Source: Dimorphilus gyrociliatus
Lineage: Eukaryota; Animalia; Annelida
DNA: 64,000 bases
Assembly: GCA_904063045.1 (NCBI GenBank)
Contig: CAJFCJ010000005.1
Span: forward strand, 243,310-307,309
Reading direction: 5' to 3'
How positions within the stretch are numbered: position 1 is the stretch's first letter; each line of letters opens with the position of its first letter. The notes beneath the pieces are model-generated. The model made no database searches and was not told where the DNA came from. It saw only the letters and a list, made by a program, of their open reading frames with translations. Shown here piece after piece: positions 752 to 14,480 of this stretch. The position numbers were made by a program, and so were the translations under genes.

Positions 752-2500
752 ATGGATACAATTGAGAATTCTTGGAATATATTCTTATCATTAAGAAGTC
801 AATGTTTAGAATTTATAGCAAAAAATTTGCTCAATATTCGTAAACTTTGCCAATTTCATAATTTTATTGTTCCCCATCAATTAGGTGATCTTATCTTTGA
901 ACACGCGAATAGAGAAAATGAATTTTTAACTAAAGATGAATTGAAATTATTCTCATCGAATATATTAACATTAACAAAAGTGAATATAGACAAGGAAAAA
1001 TTTGGTAATGAAGAGAATTTTGAATTTTTAAAAAATCATCCAATTTGCAGTTTTCATACTTCAAGTTTTGATTATTTAGATAGTTTAATGTTGAATATCG
1101 ATGCAAAGAATATCAAAGAATTATCATTATACAATTGTTCTATAAAATCGAGTCAAGTTTCAGAGTTTTTTAAAGCGGCTTCTTCGTTGAGAAAGTTGAA
1201 AATTAATAGTATGAACCTTGAAGGTGAAGAATGTAAAAATATCTTTAAAGAATGCCTTCCGGTATGCTGTAATTTGAAGGAGATTCACTTGAATTTTTGT
1301 CAATTATCACCGGAAGTTGGTGAATATATTGGAATATTTATAGGTCATCAAACTCAATTAAGTATATTAAATCTTTCGAATACAAACCTCGAAGACGATA
1401 TTGGTAGATGTATGTTTGAAAATATTACGCCATCTTGTTGCGGTGTAAGAGAATTGAATATGAAAGGTTGTAAATTCTGTCCAAAGATGAGCGGATACCT
1501 GTGCAAATTTATAGGATATCAGACTCAACTCGTTACGTTGAATCTAGAAGATACAAATCTAAAAGGAGATATTGGAAGAAATCTCTTTCAAAACACGTCT
1601 CCCTTGTGCTGTAATATTGAAAAATTGTATCTTATCTACTGTAAATTTTCACCGGAAATGAGTGAACATTTAGGTAAATTTATCGGAAATCAAAAATACC
1701 TTAAAGTAATTAATTTTAAAGGAACAGACCTTAAAGGAGATATTGGAAATAATATCTTTAGAGATACAATTCCTTTATCCTATAATCTAAGAAGTATTGA
1801 CCTAAGCCATTGTGAATTTTCCAGTGAAATGAGCGAAAATTTAGGAAAGTTTATTGGAAGACAAATTCAGTTGACAAGGTTAAAATTCTTTTTATCAAAT
1901 CTTAAATCGGATATTGGTATGAATATTTTTCGTAACATTTCAAAGTCTTGCTGTAATTTAGAATATTTGAGTTTAAGTAGTTGTTACTTGTCGTTGAGAA
2001 TGAGTAAATATCTTGGAGAGTTTATTGGACGACAAACAAAATTGAAAACGCTCCTTCTAGACGAAACTAATATTAAAGATGATATTGGAAAGAATATATT
2101 CCAGAATACACCATCGTCCTTTTGTAATTTGAATGAACTCCATCTTAATGGTTGTAATCTTACGGCCGATATGAGTGGATGTCTTGGTTCGTTTATCGGT
2201 AATCAAACTCAACTAGAAATTCTTTTACTTATTGGAATTGACCTTAGAAATGATATTGGAAAAAATTTGTTTCAAAGCATTTCGTCCTCTTGTAATAATT
2301 TAAAGAAATTGATTTTAAATTATTGTCTCTTCTCTCAAGATATGAGTCAACATCTCGCAGTATTCATTCAACGTCAAAAGCGTCTAAATACTTTTGAATT
2401 TTTCCAGACCAATCTCAAAGGAGATATAGGAAAAGATATCATTCAAAGCATTCCTCCATCTTGCCGTAATTTAGGAGGTTATTCAAATTTATTTGTTTAA
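752..2500 (+). CDS. BC-box/cullin-2-box (VHL-box-like) protein with ribonuclease-inhibitor-type LRRs; putative CRL2 E3 substrate receptor
   Basis: N-terminal SLRSQCLEFIAKNL (BC-box pattern [ST]LxxxCxxxI) followed by VPHQLGDLIF (cullin-box-like P-x-x-L-x-x-x-I). Seven regular 57-aa units (CxNLxxLxLxxC...FIGxQxxLxxLxLxxTNLKxDIG). No intron evident. Confidence 0.8.
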   Translation: MDTIENSWNIFLSLRSQCLEFIAKNLLNIRKLCQFHNFIVPHQLGDLIFEHANRENEFLTKDELKLFSSNILTLTKVNIDKEKFGNEENFEFLKNHPICSFHTSSFDYLDSLMLNIDAKNIKELSLYNCSIKSSQVSEFFKAASSLRKLKINSMNLEGEECKNIFKECLPVCCNLKEIHLNFCQLSPEVGEYIGIFIGHQTQLSILNLSNTNLEDDIGRCMFENITPSCCGVRELNMKGCKFCPKMSGYLCKFIGYQTQLVTLNLEDTNLKGDIGRNLFQNTSPLCCNIEKLYLIYCKFSPEMSEHLGKFIGNQKYLKVINFKGTDLKGDIGNNIFRDTIPLSYNLRSIDLSHCEFSSEMSENLGKFIGRQIQLTRLKFFLSNLKSDIGMNIFRNISKSCCNLEYLSLSSCYLSLRMSKYLGEFIGRQTKLKTLLLDETNIKDDIGKNIFQNTPSSFCNLNELHLNGCNLTADMSGCLGSFIGNQTQLEILLLIGIDLRNDIGKNLFQSISSSCNNLKKLILNYCLFSQDMSQHLAVFIQRQKRLNTFEFFQTNLKGDIGKDIIQSIPPSCRNLGGYSNLFV

Positions 2501-2818: not shown

Positions 2819-5800
2819 TTAATTATTGTTCCCTTCAGAAAAACAAGAAATGTTAGATCTGTCACTAGAATAATTTGAAGTATCGGGAAATCTTCTACTC
2901 ATCTTATCTTTGATTTTTAGCCAATATTTCGGTACATTCTCCCCGTCGAATAAAATATTAAACATAATTAAATGTTGATTGTTCAACTGTTTATTAAGAA
3001 ATTTCCAAAATTCATCAGATAGTTCCGAATTGCCACTTAGATCCAACAAAGTCAGTTTTTTAGGTTTGGATAAATAATTAGTTATACCATTTAAAATTGT
3101 ATCGTTCAAGTTGCATTCCATCATATAAATTTCACTTATATGCTTTGAAAATTTATGCAAAACCGTTAGAATCTTTTCACCAGATCTTCCATTCAATTTA
3201 TTTTCACTAATATCAAAAATTTGTAAATATTCGAAATATTTCAAAGATGTAATTAACGAATTTGTAATTGAAGAAGTGAAATCACATTGAGATAACTTTA
3301 ATACTTCCAATTTTCGATTATTCTTACATAATCCATTTAATAGAACTTCTCCGTATTCATCAAAGAGTTCATTTTCACTAAGATCCAAAAATTTCAAATT
3401 CTTGTTTCTGTTAAAACTATCTTCTAAGTATTTTAAAGGTTGATCAAGACAGCTCAATTTAATATCTCGTAATTCAATGTGAAGAAGGCTTTTCTTTTTG
3501 CTCAAGCAGTCAATAATCTCTTTAGAAAAGACGCTAAAATCATTTTTCATAATATTTATAACTTCTATTTTGTCTAATTTCATTAAAAATTCAACCAAGT
3601 AGCTATCTTCTCCTGGCATTAAATTGTTGTCGTACAAATATAATTCACGAAGTTGGCTCTGCCGTTCATTCAATGAAAGCAATAATAGTTTACATACTTC
3701 GTCACCTATCTTATTTTCGCTGATTGAAAAGCTAGTTAGATTTGAACAATTCACCAAAACTTTACAAATCTCAAGATTGTCGAAACCCTCTGGACTTATC
3801 CTCAAAGATCGAAGACCTAATTTTTCTAATAGTTTCGGATTAATTTCTTCCGATTGAAATAGTCTATTTGTATTGCCGAATGTACAGAATGCAATATCTA
3901 ATGTCCGTAGAGAAGGAATTGATTTTAACATATCACAGAATGTTTTGTTATTAATCTCTTCCTGTTTACGTAATCCTAGTTTTTCTATTACACTTCCTGG
4001 ACGAGATATAATGGGGAATATTGATTCACAGTTTAGATTTTCAGTGTTTAAACATCTGCCGATTTGGTCAATCTCATTGCATGTTTTGCATTTTCCCAAT
4101 TCTAAATATTTTATTTTCGTATTTTTTTCAAAGATTTTTAGAAAACTATCTTGATTCCCTTGTAAATCAAGAGTACTTTTCCAGAACGATAACTCTTGAA
4201 TATTACTGCAATACTCTCCAATTTTTGAAAGAACTTTGAAACCTACTGTTGACTTATCTAAAAATAAAATACTCAAACAATCCTTACTATTCTGTATTAC
4301 TTTTGAGAGATTGTGCGTTACATCAATACATCCGTAAGAGATAGATAAAGTTTTCAATTTCAGCCCTCCTTCGTGGATTGTTTCCAGTATAGCATTCCAA
4401 CTGGAGCTTGTAAATTGTTGTGGTATGAAAGTTAACCTATATAATCGCAAAGTTTTTATATTTTCCATTGTTTTCATAAATGAAATATTATTCCAACAGT
4501 TAAAAAATATTACATCAAGAATTGACAAGGAATGATGCAATCCCTTGCTGTAGGACACCTTTGATAATAACTCCAAATGTTCATCATTCAGAACTATATT
4601 CTGAATATTCACAGACCATATTTCAAATTCTTTATTCTGTAATATCTCAAGAAAATATTTCAAATATTTAGACGGCGTGGCGTCTTCATTAATATCCAAA
4701 ATGTTGAATTTCAAAGTAAAATCAATAATGGAAATAATTTCTCTCAAAGCCGATAAATTAAAAATATCATAATCAATAAACTGTACGAGTTTAATATACG
4801 CAAAGTTTTTGCTTTTATCCGAAGAGAAAAATGTTGAGTTCTTTTTGCAGTTCAAAACTTTCAAGTTCACTAATTTTGAAATGCAACTTTCGATTGTCAA
4901 CAATAGACTTTTCTTTAATCCATTGTTATAAATATATAACTCTTCTAATAAGTTTGAATTATTAGAAATGAGGTTCAGTATATTTTCCATTTCACCGTTA
5001 AGTGCATTCGACGAGATATCTAGTATTGTCAGAACTTGAATGTTTATTATACGGATAATAGTCTCGTGTATACTTTCTCGCCTACTTTTAAAATAATCTC
5101 TTAAGATGATCTCTTTTGGCCAATGATCTTTCGTTGTTTGAAATTGTATACATGCCAAACCGTTTTTAGACAGGTTAATTCCTTGCAAATTAGCAAAAGT
5201 ATCATCTAAATCTAATCTAATGGTACCTTCTAAAAAGCAATCTTCCAAAGATAAATGTATCAAGTTCATTGATAAACTTCTCATATTAGATAAACTTTCA
5301 TATCCAGTTATACCAATTTCATTTCTACTCAAGTTTAAAATTTCCAAATTTTTTAATTCCCTTAAAAATTCCAGATTATCGTCTAATTGACAATTTTCTA
5401 ATTGGAGATTTTTCAATTTGGATAGCTCTGAGATTTTACCCGTCATAATGCTCCCAAACTCGTTACAAAATACCGAATCAGACAAATTTAGATATACGAT
5501 CGTTGAAGGAAATATTGCGGTATCTTCTTTGATATTTTCTCGCAGAAAATGGCAAGCAGTTAATTCTAAATGTGTCAAGTTGTTATATTGATAACGGATT
5601 GACTTATTTCCCAATAACGACTTGATATTATTGCCAGACAAGTACAACTTCTTTAATGATCGACTCTCAAAAGGTATTCTAGTATCTAAATCAGTTATAG
5701 AGCATTGACTCAGGTATAATTCAGTCAAACTTGTACATTTTCCAATTGCGTGATACAAGTAAACCATGCCTTTACTTTCTATTGAATTCTTGCTTAAACT

Positions 5801-7816
5801 CAATACTTGTAATTTTTCTAATCTTTTCAAACATTCCGAAAGATTACTAATTCCCATCGACGTTATAGTACAATCATCAAAGTATATTTCTGTTAATTTA
5901 TTATATTTGTTGCTGTTTATACAACTTACAAATTCAGTCATAATTCCATCTGTTTGAACAGTTAATATAGTAATATATATGTATTTTAAGAAATAAGTAA
6001 GAAAGTATTTACCTCTTATAGTATTCATAGAAAGATTTAAAGTTTTTAGATAAGGACACGATTTCAACCATTTAATGATTATTTCTAATTCTCTCTTTTG
6101 CAAGTTGCAATTGACTAACGATAACTTTAATAATTCCATTTTCACTTTTAAATCTAATTCGTTGTCTAAACTCTCTTTTTCAATGTAATTTCCTTCAATT
6201 TCAACAGTTTCTAATTGTGGATGAGTTTTAAGAAATATCAATAGATCTTTAAGAAATATCGGTTTTCGAAGACCTTCAATTACACTGATATGTTTCAGAT
6301 TGGGAAGTCGTTCGTCAACGAAATGCTCAAAATCAAATGTTACATTTGAAAAGTATATTTCAACAATTTGCGAATCAAGTTGAAAAAGGAAATGAATAGC
6401 TTGCGGAGGAATTCTTAGATTATGAAGTGAACAAATTTCATTTTTCATTTCAATTATTTTTAATATTTCGTCTGCAATATCAGTGGTTTTCTTTAAAATG
6501 ATAGGATATATTTGACACATATTCAGATAAATTTGCGGATTTATGGTTCGTAAGAACCTAAAGATATTCGCCTTTTGGATACAATCTATATCTTCTTCCT
6601 GAATATTATCTTTCATGTCGATTTCATTTTGTTGCATTGATATATATTTGGCGGCGAAATATTCTTCGTAAATACAATGCATTTCTAGCATTTTGCGTTG
6701 ATTTCGATTGTTAATATAGCGGTAAGGCAACGCTTCAGGTTGGTTATAAAAAATATTTCTAAAGGCAGTTTTACCAATTTTCCTAATAGTTGTTTCGTCT
6801 TCGCCAAAATCTAAATCAAGTATATGTTCATATATTTCACCAATATCTTTCAATTCGTTAAAGTCTGTACATCTCATCCAGAGATATTGTAGCAAAACCG
6901 CAAAAAGCGGTATCAAGCATTTATTATACAAAATAGGATTCTGTTGAAGATTATCGATCAATTTCAAGGCACAATACTCACTAGACTCAATGCCTCTAGG
7001 ATTACTTATATGAACGAAAGCTATATTATATGTCTTTTCACGAAGTAGCCTCTTAAAGAATATTTGTAGAGAATTTTGGGAAAATCCTTTAATTTCCATA
7101 CACGAATCGCAGATATCATTAATATTATTCACAGTGCAGCCTCTTTTAAAAATGATAACTTTATCTGCCCAAAACTTATTCTCTCTTATTCGTTGAATTA
7201 TTGGTTGAGCGAGACAACTTTGAGCATTATCTAAAAATAGAATCTTTTTCCGTTGAAGATTCGTTTCATATCTGAAATAGTCTTCAGCTCCATTGAAATC
7301 TTTCGTTACTTCTGCCAAGAAGTCATCAAGTCTCTCCGACCAATATCTTTGATTATGTTTCTCCTTAAAAATGAAAGGAATAAAGGCGTCGTGAAGATCC
7401 TCTTTTTTACACCATAAATCAATCATTCTATCTAAATAGAAACTTTTACCAACGCCATCTTTTCCTTTAATGAGAAAGACATGTTTGTCAGATTTAGATT
7501 GAATTTGATCCCAAACAAATTGTCCGTCGTCATTCTTCTCATCTGAAATAGTTATGTCTGTGAAAATGTCTTCCATTCGATATTCAATGCCATCTAGATA
7601 TAGTATGTTTATTTTGGTCAGTCGTTCGCTGTGAAATCCCTTGATGAGATCACATATCGTTTGTTCTGTATAGTTCATCATAAAAGTGTTATTCTGTATA
7701 TTTGTCGAAGAAGTTTTTGGAGCTCTGGTAATAAGTTTTAGGCGATAGTTGTTTCTGGATTGGCAGGTGGCTAGAACTGAACTGTATTTTTTCTTCTTAT
7801 TACCAAATTCTTTATT
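2819..7816 (-). CDS. NACHT-LRR (NLR-like) protein, ~1600 aa
   Basis: Walker A GKDGVGKS, Walker B-like KILFLDNAQ, CLIPLFAVL (NACHT C..PL motif), winged-helix EEYFAAKYI, then a very long LRR array. The frame stays open 45 codons upstream of the ORF-track ATG (7681) to a tttttcAG acceptor at 7817-7818. One probable in-frame 63-nt intron at 5950-6012 (GTAAAT...ttcaaacAG). Confidence 0.85.
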   Translation of the reverse strand, partial: NKEFGNKKKKYSSVLATCQSRNNYRLKLITRAPKTSSTNIQNNTFMMNYTEQTICDLIKGFHSERLTKINILYLDGIEYRMEDIFTDITISDEKNDDGQFVWDQIQSKSDKHVFLIKGKDGVGKSFYLDRMIDLWCKKEDLHDAFIPFIFKEKHNQRYWSERLDDFLAEVTKDFNGAEDYFRYETNLQRKKILFLDNAQSCLAQPIIQRIRENKFWADKVIIFKRGCTVNNINDICDSCMEIKGFSQNSLQIFFKRLLREKTYNIAFVHISNPRGIESSEYCALKLIDNLQQNPILYNKCLIPLFAVLLQYLWMRCTDFNELKDIGEIYEHILDLDFGEDETTIRKIGKTAFRNIFYNQPEALPYRYINNRNQRKMLEMHCIYEEYFAAKYISMQQNEIDMKDNIQEEDIDCIQKANIFRFLRTINPQIYLNMCQIYPIILKKTTDIADEILKIIEMKNEICSLHNLRIPPQAIHFLFQLDSQIVEIYFSNVTFDFEHFVDERLPNLKHISVIEGLRKPIFLKDLLIFLKTHPQLETVEIEGNYIEKESLDNELDLKVKMELLKLSLVNCNLQKRELEIIIKWLKSCPYLKTLNLSMNTIRGKYFLTYFLKYIYITILTVQTDGIMTEFVSCINSNKYNKLTEIYFDDCTITSMGISNLSECLKRLEKLQVLSLSKNSIESKGMVYLYHAIGKCTSLTELYLSQCSITDLDTRIPFESRSLKKLYLSGNNIKSLLGNKSIRYQYNNLTHLELTACHFLRENIKEDTAIFPSTIVYLNLSDSVFCNEFGSIMTGKISELSKLKNLQLENCQLDDNLEFLRELKNLEILNLSRNEIGITGYESLSNMRSLSMNLIHLSLEDCFLEGTIRLDLDDTFANLQGINLSKNGLACIQFQTTKDHWPKEIILRDYFKSRRESIHETIIRIINIQVLTILDISSNALNGEMENILNLISNNSNLLEELYIYNNGLKKSLLLTIESCISKLVNLKVLNCKKNSTFFSSDKSKNFAYIKLVQFIDYDIFNLSALREIISIIDFTLKFNILDINEDATPSKYLKYFLEILQNKEFEIWSVNIQNIVLNDEHLELLSKVSYSKGLHHSLSILDVIFFNCWNNISFMKTMENIKTLRLYRLTFIPQQFTSSSWNAILETIHEGGLKLKTLSISYGCIDVTHNLSKVIQNSKDCLSILFLDKSTVGFKVLSKIGEYCSNIQELSFWKSTLDLQGNQDSFLKIFEKNTKIKYLELGKCKTCNEIDQIGRCLNTENLNCESIFPIISRPGSVIEKLGLRKQEEINNKTFCDMLKSIPSLRTLDIAFCTFGNTNRLFQSEEINPKLLEKLGLRSLRISPEGFDNLEICKVLVNCSNLTSFSISENKIGDEVCKLLLLSLNERQSQLRELYLYDNNLMPGEDSYLVEFLMKLDKIEVINIMKNDFSVFSKEIIDCLSKKKSLLHIELRDIKLSCLDQPLKYLEDSFNRNKNLKFLDLSENELFDEYGEVLLNGLCKNNRKLEVLKLSQCDFTSSITNSLITSLKYFEYLQIFDISENKLNGRSGEKILTVLHKFSKHISEIYMMECNLNDTILNGITNYLSKPKKLTLLDLSGNSELSDEFWKFLNKQLNNQHLIMFNILFDGENVPKYWLKIKDKMSRRFPDTSNYSSDRSNISCFSEGNNN

Positions 7817-9343: not shown

Positions 9344-12300
9344 ATGAATCAATTACTTAACATTGTAAGGAAATATTCTCCTCTTTCCAGAATTGATGAT
9401 ACAGGATTTGGTAGACTGCAAAATGATATAAATTGCGTTGTTTTCAACGCTCCAGTCTCTTATCAAGACGTTATTAATCTTATACAATGCTGTAAATATG
9501 AAATTTGTTCTAAGGATGGTTTTACTTCAAATTCCTGCGGAGAACAAGCGTTAAACAGAGTTGTTCTATTTTTAGTTACTGCAATAGCTCAGTATGTTAT
9601 TCGAGTATTATTTTTTATTTTACATATTTGAAATAGTTGTTATTGTTTTTAAAACAGGAATTTTTCAATGAATATTCAATACTTATATGGAATTTATAAA
9701 GAATTATTTGATGTTTATATATATGTATACGAAGGAGATTTTATATCGTCAGGAGTCTATCAAACTCTAAATTTTCTTACAAATAATCCATACCAAGACC
9801 AATACTTGCAGGTATTAATAACATATTAATATTCAATTGGTAATTTATTCATATGTCCTTCTCTTAAAGACTCAATTCAATGAATTTTATATAAGAAAAT
9901 TACTGAAGGCGTTATGCCAACATTTTCAACCAAAAGCACAAGATAGAGCAGTTGGAGAATGGCAGTCGAACTTTTGTAATAATCTCTATCATATTTTCAA
10001 CCTAATGTCGTACGTATAGACACATCTTGTCGTATTATCTCTTTCTTATTCTTAATGTTTACTTTAACAGAAAGGTTGAACTTGAAAAGTGTAAATATGA
10101 CATTACAGAAGCATTATTATATTGGACTGATATAAGTATGGGATGCCCAGAAAATGATCAATCAAAGCAGCTTATCTTTGATTTTTCAACAAATATGATT
10201 GTTTTTTTAGACTGTACTGCTAAATTGATAATTCAATATCCAAATAGCCATTCACTTTATTATGTAAGAATTTAGAAAGATAAAATAGCAATTTTATAAT
10301 AAACAACTACTTTTAGGGTCTAAGCGATGAAGCCTTCGATTCTCTTTTAACAAGGATTCAAAGGATACTACTAACGCCAGATTTTCCTCAAAATTCTAAC
10401 GTAAATAATGCTATGATGCTATTAGTGCAAGATTGTTTGGCAGACTTTGTCCTGTAATAAATAAATAACAGAATTCTTCAGTTATAGTTCAATTTTTCAG
10501 AAAAAGTACAGATAATAAGATATTATGTAAGATTTATGGTTTATATACAAAATTACGTACGTCACCAAAATGGGAAGTACAAAATTTAATAGAAGACATG
10601 GAGGAACCATTCAGTGAAAAGATGAAATCAATTAAAGTAAGTTTAAAAGTGTTGAAATATTAAAAAAAGAAATTATACAAGTTTGAATTGTTTCTTTAGT
10701 TGACAGATTATGGAATGAAAAGTGAATTTGATATATTCCTCGATGAATTAAAATCATTAAATAACACACGAGCAGTAAATGAATTTGTTCAGAGACACGA
10801 GGACAAATTTAAGGAAGAGTATCTTCCGATTTTAAGGTAGTAGTATAGGTTATGAATAATATTCTAACGCCAATTTATCACTCTCTCTTTCTCTCTCTCT
10901 TTAGTAGCAACGTCGACAAATTTAAAGAATATTCATTAAATCTAATTGCAAATCCTTATTCATACATTTGTTGTAGTTTTTTTGAAAAATATGTTGCCAA
11001 GAGTAAATTAGTAAACTTTAAAGAAAATCCACAATTATTAAGTTTTCTATTCGATGAAATGTATAAAGCAAACTGCGGCTATTACCAAGACTCTAAAGAT
11101 GGATTTTGGGCAATTGGTAGAGGCATTCTAGGCGCAATTGAGTAGGTTAATTAATTTTCTAGATTCTTTAACGGAATATTCATAATCAATAATAATTTAT
11201 TATTAGAAAACAAGGCTTACTACAAAAGTTAAAGAAAGATCTATATGAATTTGTTGATAGAATGTACGATCTTCCTTTGCATCCTTATCATTATAGCGTT
11301 TGCTTTATTTCTTATAAACTTGATTGGAAGGTAAAATATAGAAATTATTGTAATAATAATTAATAAATAACCAATAATTAATCTCTTTTAGGGTGAATTC
11401 GATAAACTTGATAGAATTTTGAAAAAGTTAAAAAAACTATTGGAAAGAGATCATAGTCATTTCTATAAAAATGATATAATTGTTCAAGTGACCCAATTCG
11501 TCTTTGAATATTTTCATAATTCAAATGGGTACAATACCGTTTAATTCGTAATATTTTTAGTTTTTCTAATAATTATTTATCTACAGCAAAAATAAAAAGA
11601 TCATTGAATTTACAAGCGATTTTGCAGATCTGTTTAACTATTGTTTTACATTACCTTGGGCGATTGATTTAAAAGATGAGAGGTTGGAAGGTAAACACGT
11701 CGATCTGGAAAAGAGGAGAACGTTAGCTGGACAAATTTTAATACATTTTATGAGAGATATTTACAAAACAGTTAATAAAGAGAAATCTAATTCATTCTTT
11801 ATAAATATTCTCTATATGTTTCATATTTCAGAATAGAGATTTCGATGATTTCATAAAACCGATTGTTGGCACTGTAAAACGGATTAAAAATCAGAATGAT
11901 GATGAAATTTTACAGGTTATTATTCCTTTTCAAAGAATAGAGATATACGTAATTTTAATATAATAGGAACATGCTGCCACATTTTTAAGAAGCATTGCAG
12001 ACAAATTAGACCTTCTCGGCAATGAAGCTGGCGAAGAAATCATCAAGGAATATGTGGAGAGTCGTGATATTAGCCAATTCCGTAAGAGATATATACATAT
12101 AGAGTATATATACATGCTTTATTATTTGTTTACTTTAAAAACAGCCAATATTGTTGATATGTATCCCAATTATTGCGATGCTATCTACAAAAATCTTGAA
12201 ATTTTTGTGGATATTGTAAAGGAAGATGAAGAGCTAAGTACATGGAACATGACTCAATTATTGAATAAGATAGTTCACAATGACTATGCCAAAATTAATA

Positions 12301-14480
12301 ACAATATCTTCAAATATATGATGAGTCTTTTCGATTCGAAATATGGTCCGTCACTTATAGAAGCTTATAGAAAATTAGCTACAGCTCGATTTAGCTACTT
12401 TCAAGACTATCATACTAAAATTATGAACACTGTTAAATCTTACGAATATGGTAGTTCTTACTTACCTCTTTTACCAGACTTATGTCAAACTGAGCAACTA
12501 ACCAAATCTTATACCAAATTGGTCTGGGATAAAATAAAAGTTACTGCTCCAGAATATGTTAATACTGTATTCGCTGCTCTAAGAGAAATTGCTTTACGAA
12601 ATAAAAGTGCTGTTGCTGTTTACAAATCAGATTTGGAAAAGATGAAAGATAATCCTAAGATTCATGACCAAGTTCTTGGAATTTTGGATGTTTTAGAAGG
12701 TAGAACTTTGGAAAAAGTAACAAATGATATTGATGAACAAAGAGAGGACATTGAGAATCTCGATTCCAGAGTCACTGAAAATGAAGAAAAGATTGTTGTT
12801 CTCGATGCCGATGTTAAAGAAACAAAGAAAGATGTTGCTGCTGTAAAATTAGATATGAAGGAAGCAAAGAAACGCCTTGGTCAAATTGAATATACAATGA
12901 AAGGACTCGACGAAAGAGTTGAACAACTAAATCATATGACTCTATCACACGCTCCAGCATGGTCTCGTCATGTTTCAGAGTTAATGAATGTCAAGTCTGA
13001 TAATGATTGGAGACTTCTCTCTATGAAATTGAACTATTCTAATGATGATATTCGAAATTGGGCTACTCAACCAGATCCTTGTCTGTCAATGTTGGACGAA
13101 TGGTTCGCTACACACAAAACTAGAGAAGCTACTTTTGCTATTTTAAATAATTTGAAAGAAATGAACAGACTCGACGCTGCAGAAATTGTGGAAAATGCTT
13201 TAGCTGATGTAAAAAATGTTGTTAAAGATGATAAAGATGAAGAATTTGAAAAACCTGAAATATTCCTCAGCTATCAATGGGGACATCAACAAGAAGCTAA
13301 AATGTTAAAGAAACACCTAGAGATGGCCGGCTTTAAAGCCTGGATGGACATTGGTCAAATGGGTGGAGGCGATAAACTATATGCAAAAATTGATGATGGT
13401 GTAAGATCAGCTAAAGTAATCATTAGCTGTGTAAGTGAGAAATATGCAAAATCAGCCAATTGTTGTAGAGAAGTAAATCTATCAACTAACCTTGGTAAAC
13501 CAATGATTCCTTTACTTATGGAAAAACTCCAATGGCCGCCTGCTGGTCCGATGGGTCCAATTATGTCGGAATATCTATATGTTCAATTCTACAAAAATGG
13601 AGGCATGCAAAAAGGTGATACTGTATTTTGGATGCCTCCTAAATTTCAAGAGCTACTGATGCAAATTCGGTACTATGTTGTTCCTGATATGAAATTAATA
13701 ACTAAAGATTCTCCATATGCTGGATGGATGAATCCACCTGAAGAAATTATAATAATACCAAAGAGAGAGCAAAAGGCTATAGAATCTAAAAAATCAAATA
13801 CTAAAAATGAGGCAGAAGTGATAAGTCCCGATGTTTTCATCTCTTATCAATGGGATAAACAACCTCAAATCAAACGCCTATATAAGAAGTTGAGTGGATT
13901 GGGATATCATTGTTGGCTGGACATAATGCAAATGGGTGGTGGAGATTCACTATTTGATAAAATTGATAAAGGAATCAGAGGTTGTAGAGTTGTTATTTCC
14001 TGTGTCACACCGAAATATGCTTTAAGTGCTAATTGTCGAAGAGAAGTTTCATTATCGGGAGCATTAAATAAACCAATCATACCATTATTATTGGACAATA
14101 TGAAGTGGCCTCCAGAGGGACCAATGTCAATGGTATTTACTCAACTGTTATATATAGGTTTTCACAGGAAGAAAGATGATAAACTATGGGAAGGCGATGA
14201 ATTTAATCAATTGATTTCGAAAATTGATATGAATGCACCTGGTGGCAAAAATGAGCAGCAATCATCTAGCAAAGCAATAAACAATGAAACTGAAAAGAAA
14301 AATACACAGACAAAGAAAACGGATGAAGAGTCTAAGAAAGAAGAGAAAAATGTTGGAGATGAAGCCAAACAGCCTGAACAGTCTCCTCAACCTAAACAAA
14401 GAGATAACTCTGAACCCTCATCTCATAATACTAACAATACCCCTCCGCCTAAAACATCATCGACATGTAATATTCTATAA
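9344..14480 (+). CDS. Paralog A: multi-exon helical N-terminus + coiled coil + DEATH + TIR + TIR + CaaX protein
   Basis: Exons joined by GT-AG introns (e.g. 9592-9657, 9812-9869, 12082-12144). First exon (..KYSPL..) is homologous to the first exons at 57865 and 63580. Last exon has heptad repeats, a DEATH motif (DWRLLSMKL...MLDEWF...LKEMNRLDAAEIVE), two TIR_2-like domains (IFLSYQW, VFISYQW; SANCxRE) and terminal CNIL*. Confidence 0.85.

Follow-up and report, generated by a model that had tools for sequence, protein, structure and literature searches.

A conserved candidate CaaX box at the C-termini of Death-TIR-TIR proteins from Dimorphilus gyrociliatus and other animals

The site of a TIR protein decides its signalling, and TRAM, TIRAP, and SARM1 are each defined by their targeting: an N-myristoyl group in TRAM, a phosphoinositide-binding basic motif in TIRAP (also known as MAL), and, in SARM1, an N-terminal mitochondrial signal through which the protein is membrane-associated. 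A stretch of 64,000 nucleotides from the annelid Dimorphilus gyrociliatus (positions 243,310 to 307,309 of contig CAJFCJ010000005.1, assembly GCA_904063045.1; hereafter the window) raises the question of whether TIR proteins can also be held at membranes by a C-terminal isoprenoid. The window contains three genes, A, B, and C, whose products each have a Death domain followed by two TIR domains (TIR1 and TIR2), a tail, and a C-terminus of the form C-x-x-L. An initial annotation made from the sequence alone took this ending for a CaaX prenylation box (Cys, the residues a1 and a2, and the terminal residue X) and the proteins for lipid-anchored TIR enzymes. A lipid anchor is supported by conservation of the ending across the protein family, by the pattern of residues at a1, a2, and X, by the documented use of the same boxes in other proteins, and by transcripts of B and C. 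Judging from these lines of evidence, we consider it likely that A, B, and C finish in a true CaaX box, made up of their last four residues, and that the products are geranylgeranyl-anchored, SARM1-like TIR signalling proteins. In the best reading of the locus, the three genes are tandem paralogues belonging to an ancient bilaterian family of cytosolic proteins.

The three C-termini given in the initial annotation are borne out by direct reading of the DNA (Table 1). Gene A ends in K-T-S-S-T-C-N-I-L-stop, gene B in R-K-S-S-T-C-L-L-L-stop, and gene C in K-K-S-S-T-C-S-I-L-stop; all three have a Cys four residues from the C-terminus, an aliphatic a2, and Leu as X (CNIL, CLLL, and CSIL). The proteins are ~99% identical from a long helix that precedes the Death domain to the end of TIR2, and diverge in the N-terminal part and in the tail, by which we mean the stretch between TIR2 and the C-terminus. 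The tail of A aligns with that of C and is homologous to it throughout, and the tail of B aligns with no tail in the family. The claim that B has an unrelated tail and yet keeps SSTCxxL therefore stands. The upstream basic residues said to accompany the motif are few, with one Lys in A and two basic residues each in B and C.

Could A, B, and C share this ending through recent common descent or gene conversion, with the motif itself unselected? The ~99% identical cores mark the genes as very recent or homogenised copies, and the homology of the A and C tails over their whole length fits such an origin. The tail of B does not: it is unalignable with the A and C tails but still ends in S-S-T-C-x-x-L, and its S-S-T codons show three synonymous and zero non-synonymous differences (TCG TCC ACG in B, TCA TCG ACA in A and C). 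Moreover, the motif is kept over six phyla in tails that are otherwise unalignable. We find an unselected ending hardly credible, and an explanation by chance or common descent was rejected on this cross-phylum conservation.

Whether the reading frames end where the mRNAs do was judged from the contigs of the only public run that contains the region, placed on positions 52401-58400. This run contains twelve joints, all of which are CT..AC on the + strand and thus correspond to GT..AG introns of 56-101 nt on the - strand, which identifies it as a transcript assembly. An unspliced contig with 0 mismatches lies on 52492-52925 and spans the tail of B, the CLLL codons, and the stop, while a second contig connects the last 37 codons of the C tail (the placed region ended at 58400) with the shared core. 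There is no joint or loose end inside the B or C tails in these contigs, and no splicing past the stops of B and C. The CaaX motif is therefore the true end of the translated mRNA for these two genes. It follows that the ends are most improbable as artefacts of reading open reading frames (ORFs), with the real mRNAs splicing from the tail into a downstream exon. Such an explanation could appeal to the end of gene A, which is read from its ORF, and to the fact that contigs drop rare isoforms, but it is opposed by the uninterrupted passage of RNA through the B tail and stop, by the contiguity of the C end with the core, and by independent annotations from dozens of species that stop at the same motif.

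This last point rests on a broad set of relatives. The queries of all searches were last-exon ORFs rather than exon-joined proteins. A word search with an 808-aa last-exon ORF gave 129 homologues (E down to 0), of which the 120 listed underlie the homologue counts; the full-length products of the window itself (~1500 aa) would be outside the length range of that search. The best named matches are D. gyrociliatus proteins at paralogue level, with 61% and 49% identity. Further matches come from many molluscs, echinoderms, hemichordates, amphioxus, and rotifers, from one flatworm, and from one nematode, and one sea-urchin entry has been deposited as 'MyD88-like protein L1'. Vertebrate or arthropod proteins are absent from the 120 homologues listed. 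A C-x-x-X end, with the Cys at position -4, is kept in 100 of these 120, or in 103 of 123 sequences when the three window genes are included, and its carriers span six phyla (Annelida, Mollusca, Echinodermata, Hemichordata, Cephalochordata, and Rotifera). Sequence comparison thus suggests that the CaaX box has probably been kept since the bilaterian ancestor.

The positions of the box differ sharply in how far they are constrained. Among 100 non-redundant tails, the Cys is present in all 100. Position a1 is free, with nine residue types (S39, V16, L14, C11, I7, T6, A3, Q3, and N1), a2 is Ile, Leu, or Val in 99 (I52, L35, V12, and M1), and X is distributed as L57, M19, I10, S6, V5, and Q3. Ahead of the box, Lys occupies position Cys-4 in 50 tails and Cys-5 in 47, and the residue at Cys-3 is Ser in 99 and Thr in one. 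The C-terminal motif of the family can accordingly be written as [K][K/Q]-S-x-[TAS]-C-x-[ILV]-[L/M/I/V]. In an alignment of 69 sequences, the CaaX Cys is among only 17 invariant columns, and the Ser at Cys-3, S802 in gene A, is nearly invariant. The tails that carry the motif range from 20 to 351 residues (median 87), with a median of 84% disorder-promoting residues, and only 304 of 4,851 tail pairs compared are alignable. Outside the last eight residues, Cys accounts for 27 of 10,014 tail residues (0.27%). An invariant Cys column against so low a Cys content elsewhere in the tails shows that the motif is more than chance. The identity of X follows taxonomy to some extent: annelid and amphioxus members all have Leu, molluscs mostly Leu, echinoderms and hemichordates include Ile and Val, and rotifers mostly have CS[IL]M, which is of the farnesyl type.

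Prenyltransferase substrates, and not C-terminal docking peptides, show this combination of an unconstrained a1 with an aliphatic a2 and a limited set of residues at X, and each of the three boxes in the window has been documented elsewhere. CNIL is the box of human GBP2, in which incorporation of 3H-mevalonate required the box; GFP-CNIL was directed to the Golgi, a localisation that was sensitive to inhibitors, and a geranylgeranyltransferase inhibitor (GGTI) affected GBP2 (PMC2998424). CLLL is prenylated by human farnesyltransferase (FTase), and partly by human geranylgeranyltransferase I (GGTase-I), in humanised yeast, where the human GGTase-I accepts CaaL/I/M and not CaaS/Q (PMC11152559). 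CSIL is described as the motif for geranylgeranylation of Arabidopsis ROP1, and prenylated PGL2 has this motif too (PMC12609287).

The conserved S-x-x-C-x-[ILV]-[LM] end might instead act in docking (as a PDZ-type or other ligand) or as a C-terminal degron, or it might be S-acylated and not prenylated. Ends such as S-I-L, and hydrophobic ends in general, do look like PDZ ligands. In addition, the Ser at Cys-3 (99/100) is conserved more strongly than a2 or X although prenyltransferases do not require a Ser, and a second Cys stands beside the first in 17 of the 100 tails. PDZ ligands, however, fix positions 0 and -2, whereas here -2 (a1) is free and -3 (Cys) is invariant, and the PDZ-ligand or docking reading was rejected because the free and fixed positions are reversed. 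An S-acylation site needs no fixed four-residue distance from the end. Furthermore, the residues found at X (L, M, I, V, S, and Q) and at a2 (I, L, and V) are those of FTase and GGTase-I substrates, and CNIL, CLLL, and CSIL are themselves proven prenyl acceptors. Taken together, this makes the alternatives to prenylation quite improbable.

Several observations nevertheless weigh against a geranylgeranyl anchor, or narrow it. The box is missing in 20 of the 120 listed homologues. Nine of these are truncated models that stop inside TIR2 or no more than 25 residues past its end, and the other 11 carry different tails; most of the latter are divergent, with a TIR2 identity of 47-54%, and three are at 63-73%. 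X is Met in rotifers, and certain lineages have Ile, Val, Ser, or Gln there, so that the type of lipid and the enzyme would differ among lineages and would not always be geranylgeranyl and its transferase; some of the boxes are non-canonical. Amphioxus members have a strong polybasic stretch, and A, B, and C a weak one. The end of gene A is given by its ORF and by conservation, and a minor isoform that splices out of the tail may be compatible with the contigs of B and C. The invariant Ser is unaccounted for by prenyltransferase specificity, and the lipidation of every family member is something that we infer from the motif. Finally, GBP2 lacking CNIL was distributed like the wild type, though it was lost from the membrane fraction (PMC2998424), which implies that a CaaX box does not always set localisation.

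The closest parallels to the C-terminal arrangement are found in the hypervariable tails of small GTPases (K-Ras4B, Rac1, Cdc42, RhoA, and Rap1), which share a disordered tail, Lys residues, a Ser near the Cys, an aliphatic a2, and Leu or Met as X. Rac1 ends in CLLL, like gene B, and Cdc42 in K-K-S-R-R-C-V-L-L. In contrast to the small GTPases, the tail is here attached to a Death-TIR-TIR protein of ~1500 residues, the spacer reaches up to 351 residues, and the basic cluster of the window genes is weak. K-Ras4B, RhoA, Cdc42, and Rap1 bear a phosphorylatable Ser near the prenyl-Cys, and by analogy with them the invariant Ser of the family may be a phospho-switch. The second Cys that adjoins the CaaX Cys in some tails is at Cys-1 in 6 and at a1 in 11. 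Palmitoylation or dual lipidation beside the prenyl-Cys occurs in Ras, RalA, and the brain isoform of Cdc42, and the additional Cys could, on the same kind of analogy, be a palmitoylation or dual-lipidation site that replaces the basic cluster.

Prenylation would call for a C-terminus that is accessible in the cytosol. Pfam places a Death domain (PF00531) and two TIR_2 domains (PF13676) in A, B, and C and in five homologues, with a weak DUF1664 match for the long helix in B and C. The AlphaFold (AF2) model of the last exon of A has a mean predicted local distance difference test (pLDDT) score of 79, and contains helical repeats at residues 30-215, TIR folds at 403-540 and 594-727, and the tail at 728-808. 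The A tail has a pLDDT of 29-48, no secondary structure, and 95% disorder-promoting residues. A segment resembling a membrane span was not found in the window proteins: the 19-residue Kyte-Doolittle mean reaches a maximum of 0.86-1.31 in the last exons and is at most 1.21 in the 11 in-phase exons of B. The first-exon ORFs begin hydrophilic. The lack of a membrane span, the cytosolic nature of Death and TIR domains, and the disordered A tail all point to a cytosolic protein with an accessible C-terminus.

The tail of B is of a different kind. When a 179-aa piece was modelled from the single sequence, its E/R/K-rich part, which is not present in A and C, formed a helix that is followed by 11 residues and then CLLL. 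The initial annotation had described this tail as a charged coiled coil; the charge is confirmed, and the prediction is one single helix of 66 residues instead. Such a helix is predicted to form a stiff spacer of ~10 nm ahead of the anchor. The spacers were likewise described as flexible and variable in length. Their length does vary, and the one in A is predicted to be disordered, whereas that in B would be partly a stiff helix.

The TIR domains themselves point towards SARM1. The solved structures nearest to TIR1 by sequence are SARM1 TIR domains (Table 1), and the Glu of C-C-R-E-V in TIR1 aligns with the catalytic Glu of H-K-E-I-V in SARM1 (the E642-equivalent in the KE-IVTAL motif). For TIR2, the nearest solved relatives are bacterial NAD+-cleaving TIRs, with R-R-E-V at the same place as the TIR1 Glu. 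Both residues, E473 and E664, are conserved in at least 90% of the 69-sequence alignment. Among structural matches, full-length Caenorhabditis elegans TIR-1 (8p2m, E 8e-7) and human SARM1 are at the top, followed by the SARM1 TIR (TM-score ~0.72 by target length), SPARTA, and AbTir, and the MyD88 TIR lies lower. The TIRs of A, B, and C are thus nearer to SARM1 and to bacterial NADase TIRs than to MyD88. From this relationship and the shared Glu, A, B, and C may be TIR enzymes, as the initial annotation named them.

In overall architecture, SARM1 and C. elegans TIR-1, which are ARM-SAM-SAM-TIR NAD+ hydrolases, resemble the window proteins in their N-terminal part of ARM-like helices, in a middle that oligomerises, and in a TIR at the C-terminal side. 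They differ in that the place of the SAM domains is here taken by the helix and the Death domain, in the number of TIRs (two instead of one), and in the C-terminal CaaX box that stands against an N-terminal targeting sequence. The possibility that A, B, and C are SARM1 orthologues was rejected, given that Pfam finds no SAM match and that the Death domain and long helix occupy that place. At most, they work like SARM1 without being members of it.

On these grounds, a mechanism can be proposed. Leu as X in the three window genes indicates GGTase-I as the modifying enzyme, which would attach a C20 isoprenoid to the Cys; rotifer members would be farnesylated instead. The usual cleavage of -aaX and carboxyl-methylation would come next. 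Once modified, the protein would reside at the cytosolic side of a membrane, and the spacer would keep the Death domain and both TIRs at a distance of some nanometres. Two-dimensional clustering at the membrane would favour Death- and TIR-driven assembly, and signalling would follow, through an adaptor role or through the NAD+ cleavage suggested by SARM1-like TIRs with a conserved catalytic Glu. One can go further and imagine lipid-anchored enzymes that cleave NAD+ with twin TIRs and belong to an ancient bilaterian family that vertebrates have lost, in which prenylation is tuned by phosphorylation of the invariant Ser, clustering through Death switches the enzyme on, and ADP-ribose-type messengers are produced at the membrane, for example, for nearby channels. 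We regard this complete scenario as rather unlikely.

Other innate-immune proteins share individual features with the family. TRAM and TIRAP/MAL are also TIR proteins taken to membranes by a lipid or a basic motif, and MyD88 also combines Death and TIR; unlike these three, the window proteins have a putative C-terminal isoprenoid anchor and a Death-TIR-TIR order with a large N-terminal region. GBP1, GBP2, and GBP5 are innate-immune effectors with a CaaX anchor, and GBP2 has the very box of gene A, but the GBPs are unrelated dynamin-like GTPases without a long spacer. Invertebrate families of 'evolutionarily conserved TIR-domain-containing' proteins are widespread in invertebrates and missing from vertebrates (PMC6321704). 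The present family is of this class, with members in Lophotrochozoa, Ambulacraria, amphioxus, and rotifers, and its likely description is that of Gerdol et al. 2017 (Dev Comp Immunol 70:145).

Prenyl anchors, the targeting of TIR adaptors by lipids or basic motifs, and the gene family as uncharacterised database proteins are all already known. Full-text literature searches returned nothing in which a TIR protein is connected with a CaaX box of its own, in a coverage that excluded Gerdol et al. 2017, so that an earlier notice there is possible; the matches concerned artificial CaaX tags, ICMT/Ras, and unrelated reviews. The initial remark that this targeting mode is unfamiliar for TIR proteins agrees with this outcome, as no natively prenylated TIR protein was found in the searchable literature. 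The finding is robust at the sequence level, and the lipid anchor is putative. As far as the searchable literature goes, the Death-TIR-TIR-CaaX family is unstudied at the bench, and the CaaX box provides it with a cheap, testable hypothesis, namely membrane tethering that is perhaps phospho-regulated. Should the TIRs prove to be NADases, the family would generate nucleotide signals at membranes in animals.

The features discussed above are collected in Table 1. Of the exons of gene B, the 11 between 57096 and the stop form an open frame in phase, and the three 5'-most exons (57198-57865) are not open in the phase deduced from the 3' end, from which it appears that one joint there is incomplete in the contig data. 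Gene B has in total 13 very short GT..AG introns (window 55011-57620). Eight positions of the core shared by B and C (53017-53632) show differences between the RNA contigs and the window, probably because reads of a paralogue or allele have been collapsed on near-identical copies.

Table 1. Features of genes A, B, and C, with positions in the window.
Feature	Positions	Strand	Basis and remarks
Gene A, approximate extent	9344-14480	+	5' exons inferred from ORFs similar to those of B and C
Gene A, large terminal (last-exon) ORF	12054-14480	+	ORF
Gene A, long single helix between helical repeats and Death, coiled-coil candidate	12708-12869	+	AF2 helix 219-272, 54 residues
Gene A, Death domain	12963-13214	+	PF00531, E 9e-11; six-helix region 304-387 in model
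Gene A, TIR1	13260-13673	+	PF13676; best solved relatives SARM1 TIR, E 4e-5
Gene A, TIR2	13830-14225	+	PF13676; 48% identical to TIR1; contains E664
Gene A, tail/spacer, K/E/P/S/N-rich	14226-14465	+	residues 725-804 of last-exon ORF; predicted disordered
Gene A, Ser three residues ahead of CaaX Cys	14457-14459	+	family-invariant position; S802
Gene A, CaaX box C-N-I-L and TAA stop	14466-14480	+	read directly
Gene A, CaaX Cys codon	14466-14468	+	read directly
Gene A, TAA stop	14478-14480	+	read directly
Gene B, at least 14 exons	52498-57865	-	RNA contigs and sequence; introns 56-101 nt, ~1500 codons
Gene B, large terminal ORF	52498-55134	-	ORF
Gene B, last exon (helical repeats, helix, Death, TIR, TIR, tail, CaaX)	52498-55010	-	contigs and sequence
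Gene B, intron, GT..AG	55011-55071	-	deduced from contig arithmetic and sequence; lies at a repeat
Gene B, E/R/K-rich single alpha-helix of tail, ~66 residues	52534-52731	-	AF2, helix 103-168, pLDDT 94-98
Gene B, Ser three residues ahead of CaaX Cys	52519-52521	-	family-invariant position
Gene B, CaaX box C-L-L-L and TAA stop	52498-52512	-	read directly; stop 52498-52500
Gene C, approximate extent	58289-63580	-	ORFs similar to exons of A and B; RNA for tail only
Gene C, large terminal ORF	58289-60658	-	ORF
Gene C, tail/spacer, K/E-rich low complexity	58304-58678	-	homologous to A tail
Gene C, Ser three residues ahead of CaaX Cys	58310-58312	-	family-invariant position
Gene C, CaaX box C-S-I-L and TAA stop	58289-58303	-	read directly; stop 58289-58291

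The surroundings of the three genes contain further ORFs with recognisable domains. Directly upstream of gene A lies an NLR-like ORF of 1620 aa (2819-7681, - strand) with a NACHT domain (PF05729) and many leucine-rich repeats (LRRs), which is adjoined by an LRR ORF at 752-2500 (+ strand). Neither the NACHT-LRR ORF, which ends in ...EGNNN, nor the LRR ORF ends in a CaaX box. Such a set of NACHT-LRR, LRR, and three TIR genes gives the window the look of a neighbourhood of innate-immune genes. Beside gene B is a 1321-aa ORF (46576-50541, + strand), for which neither a TRPM identity nor a connection with the TIR genes is supported and which has only a generic Ion_trans match (PF00520, residues 941-1207).

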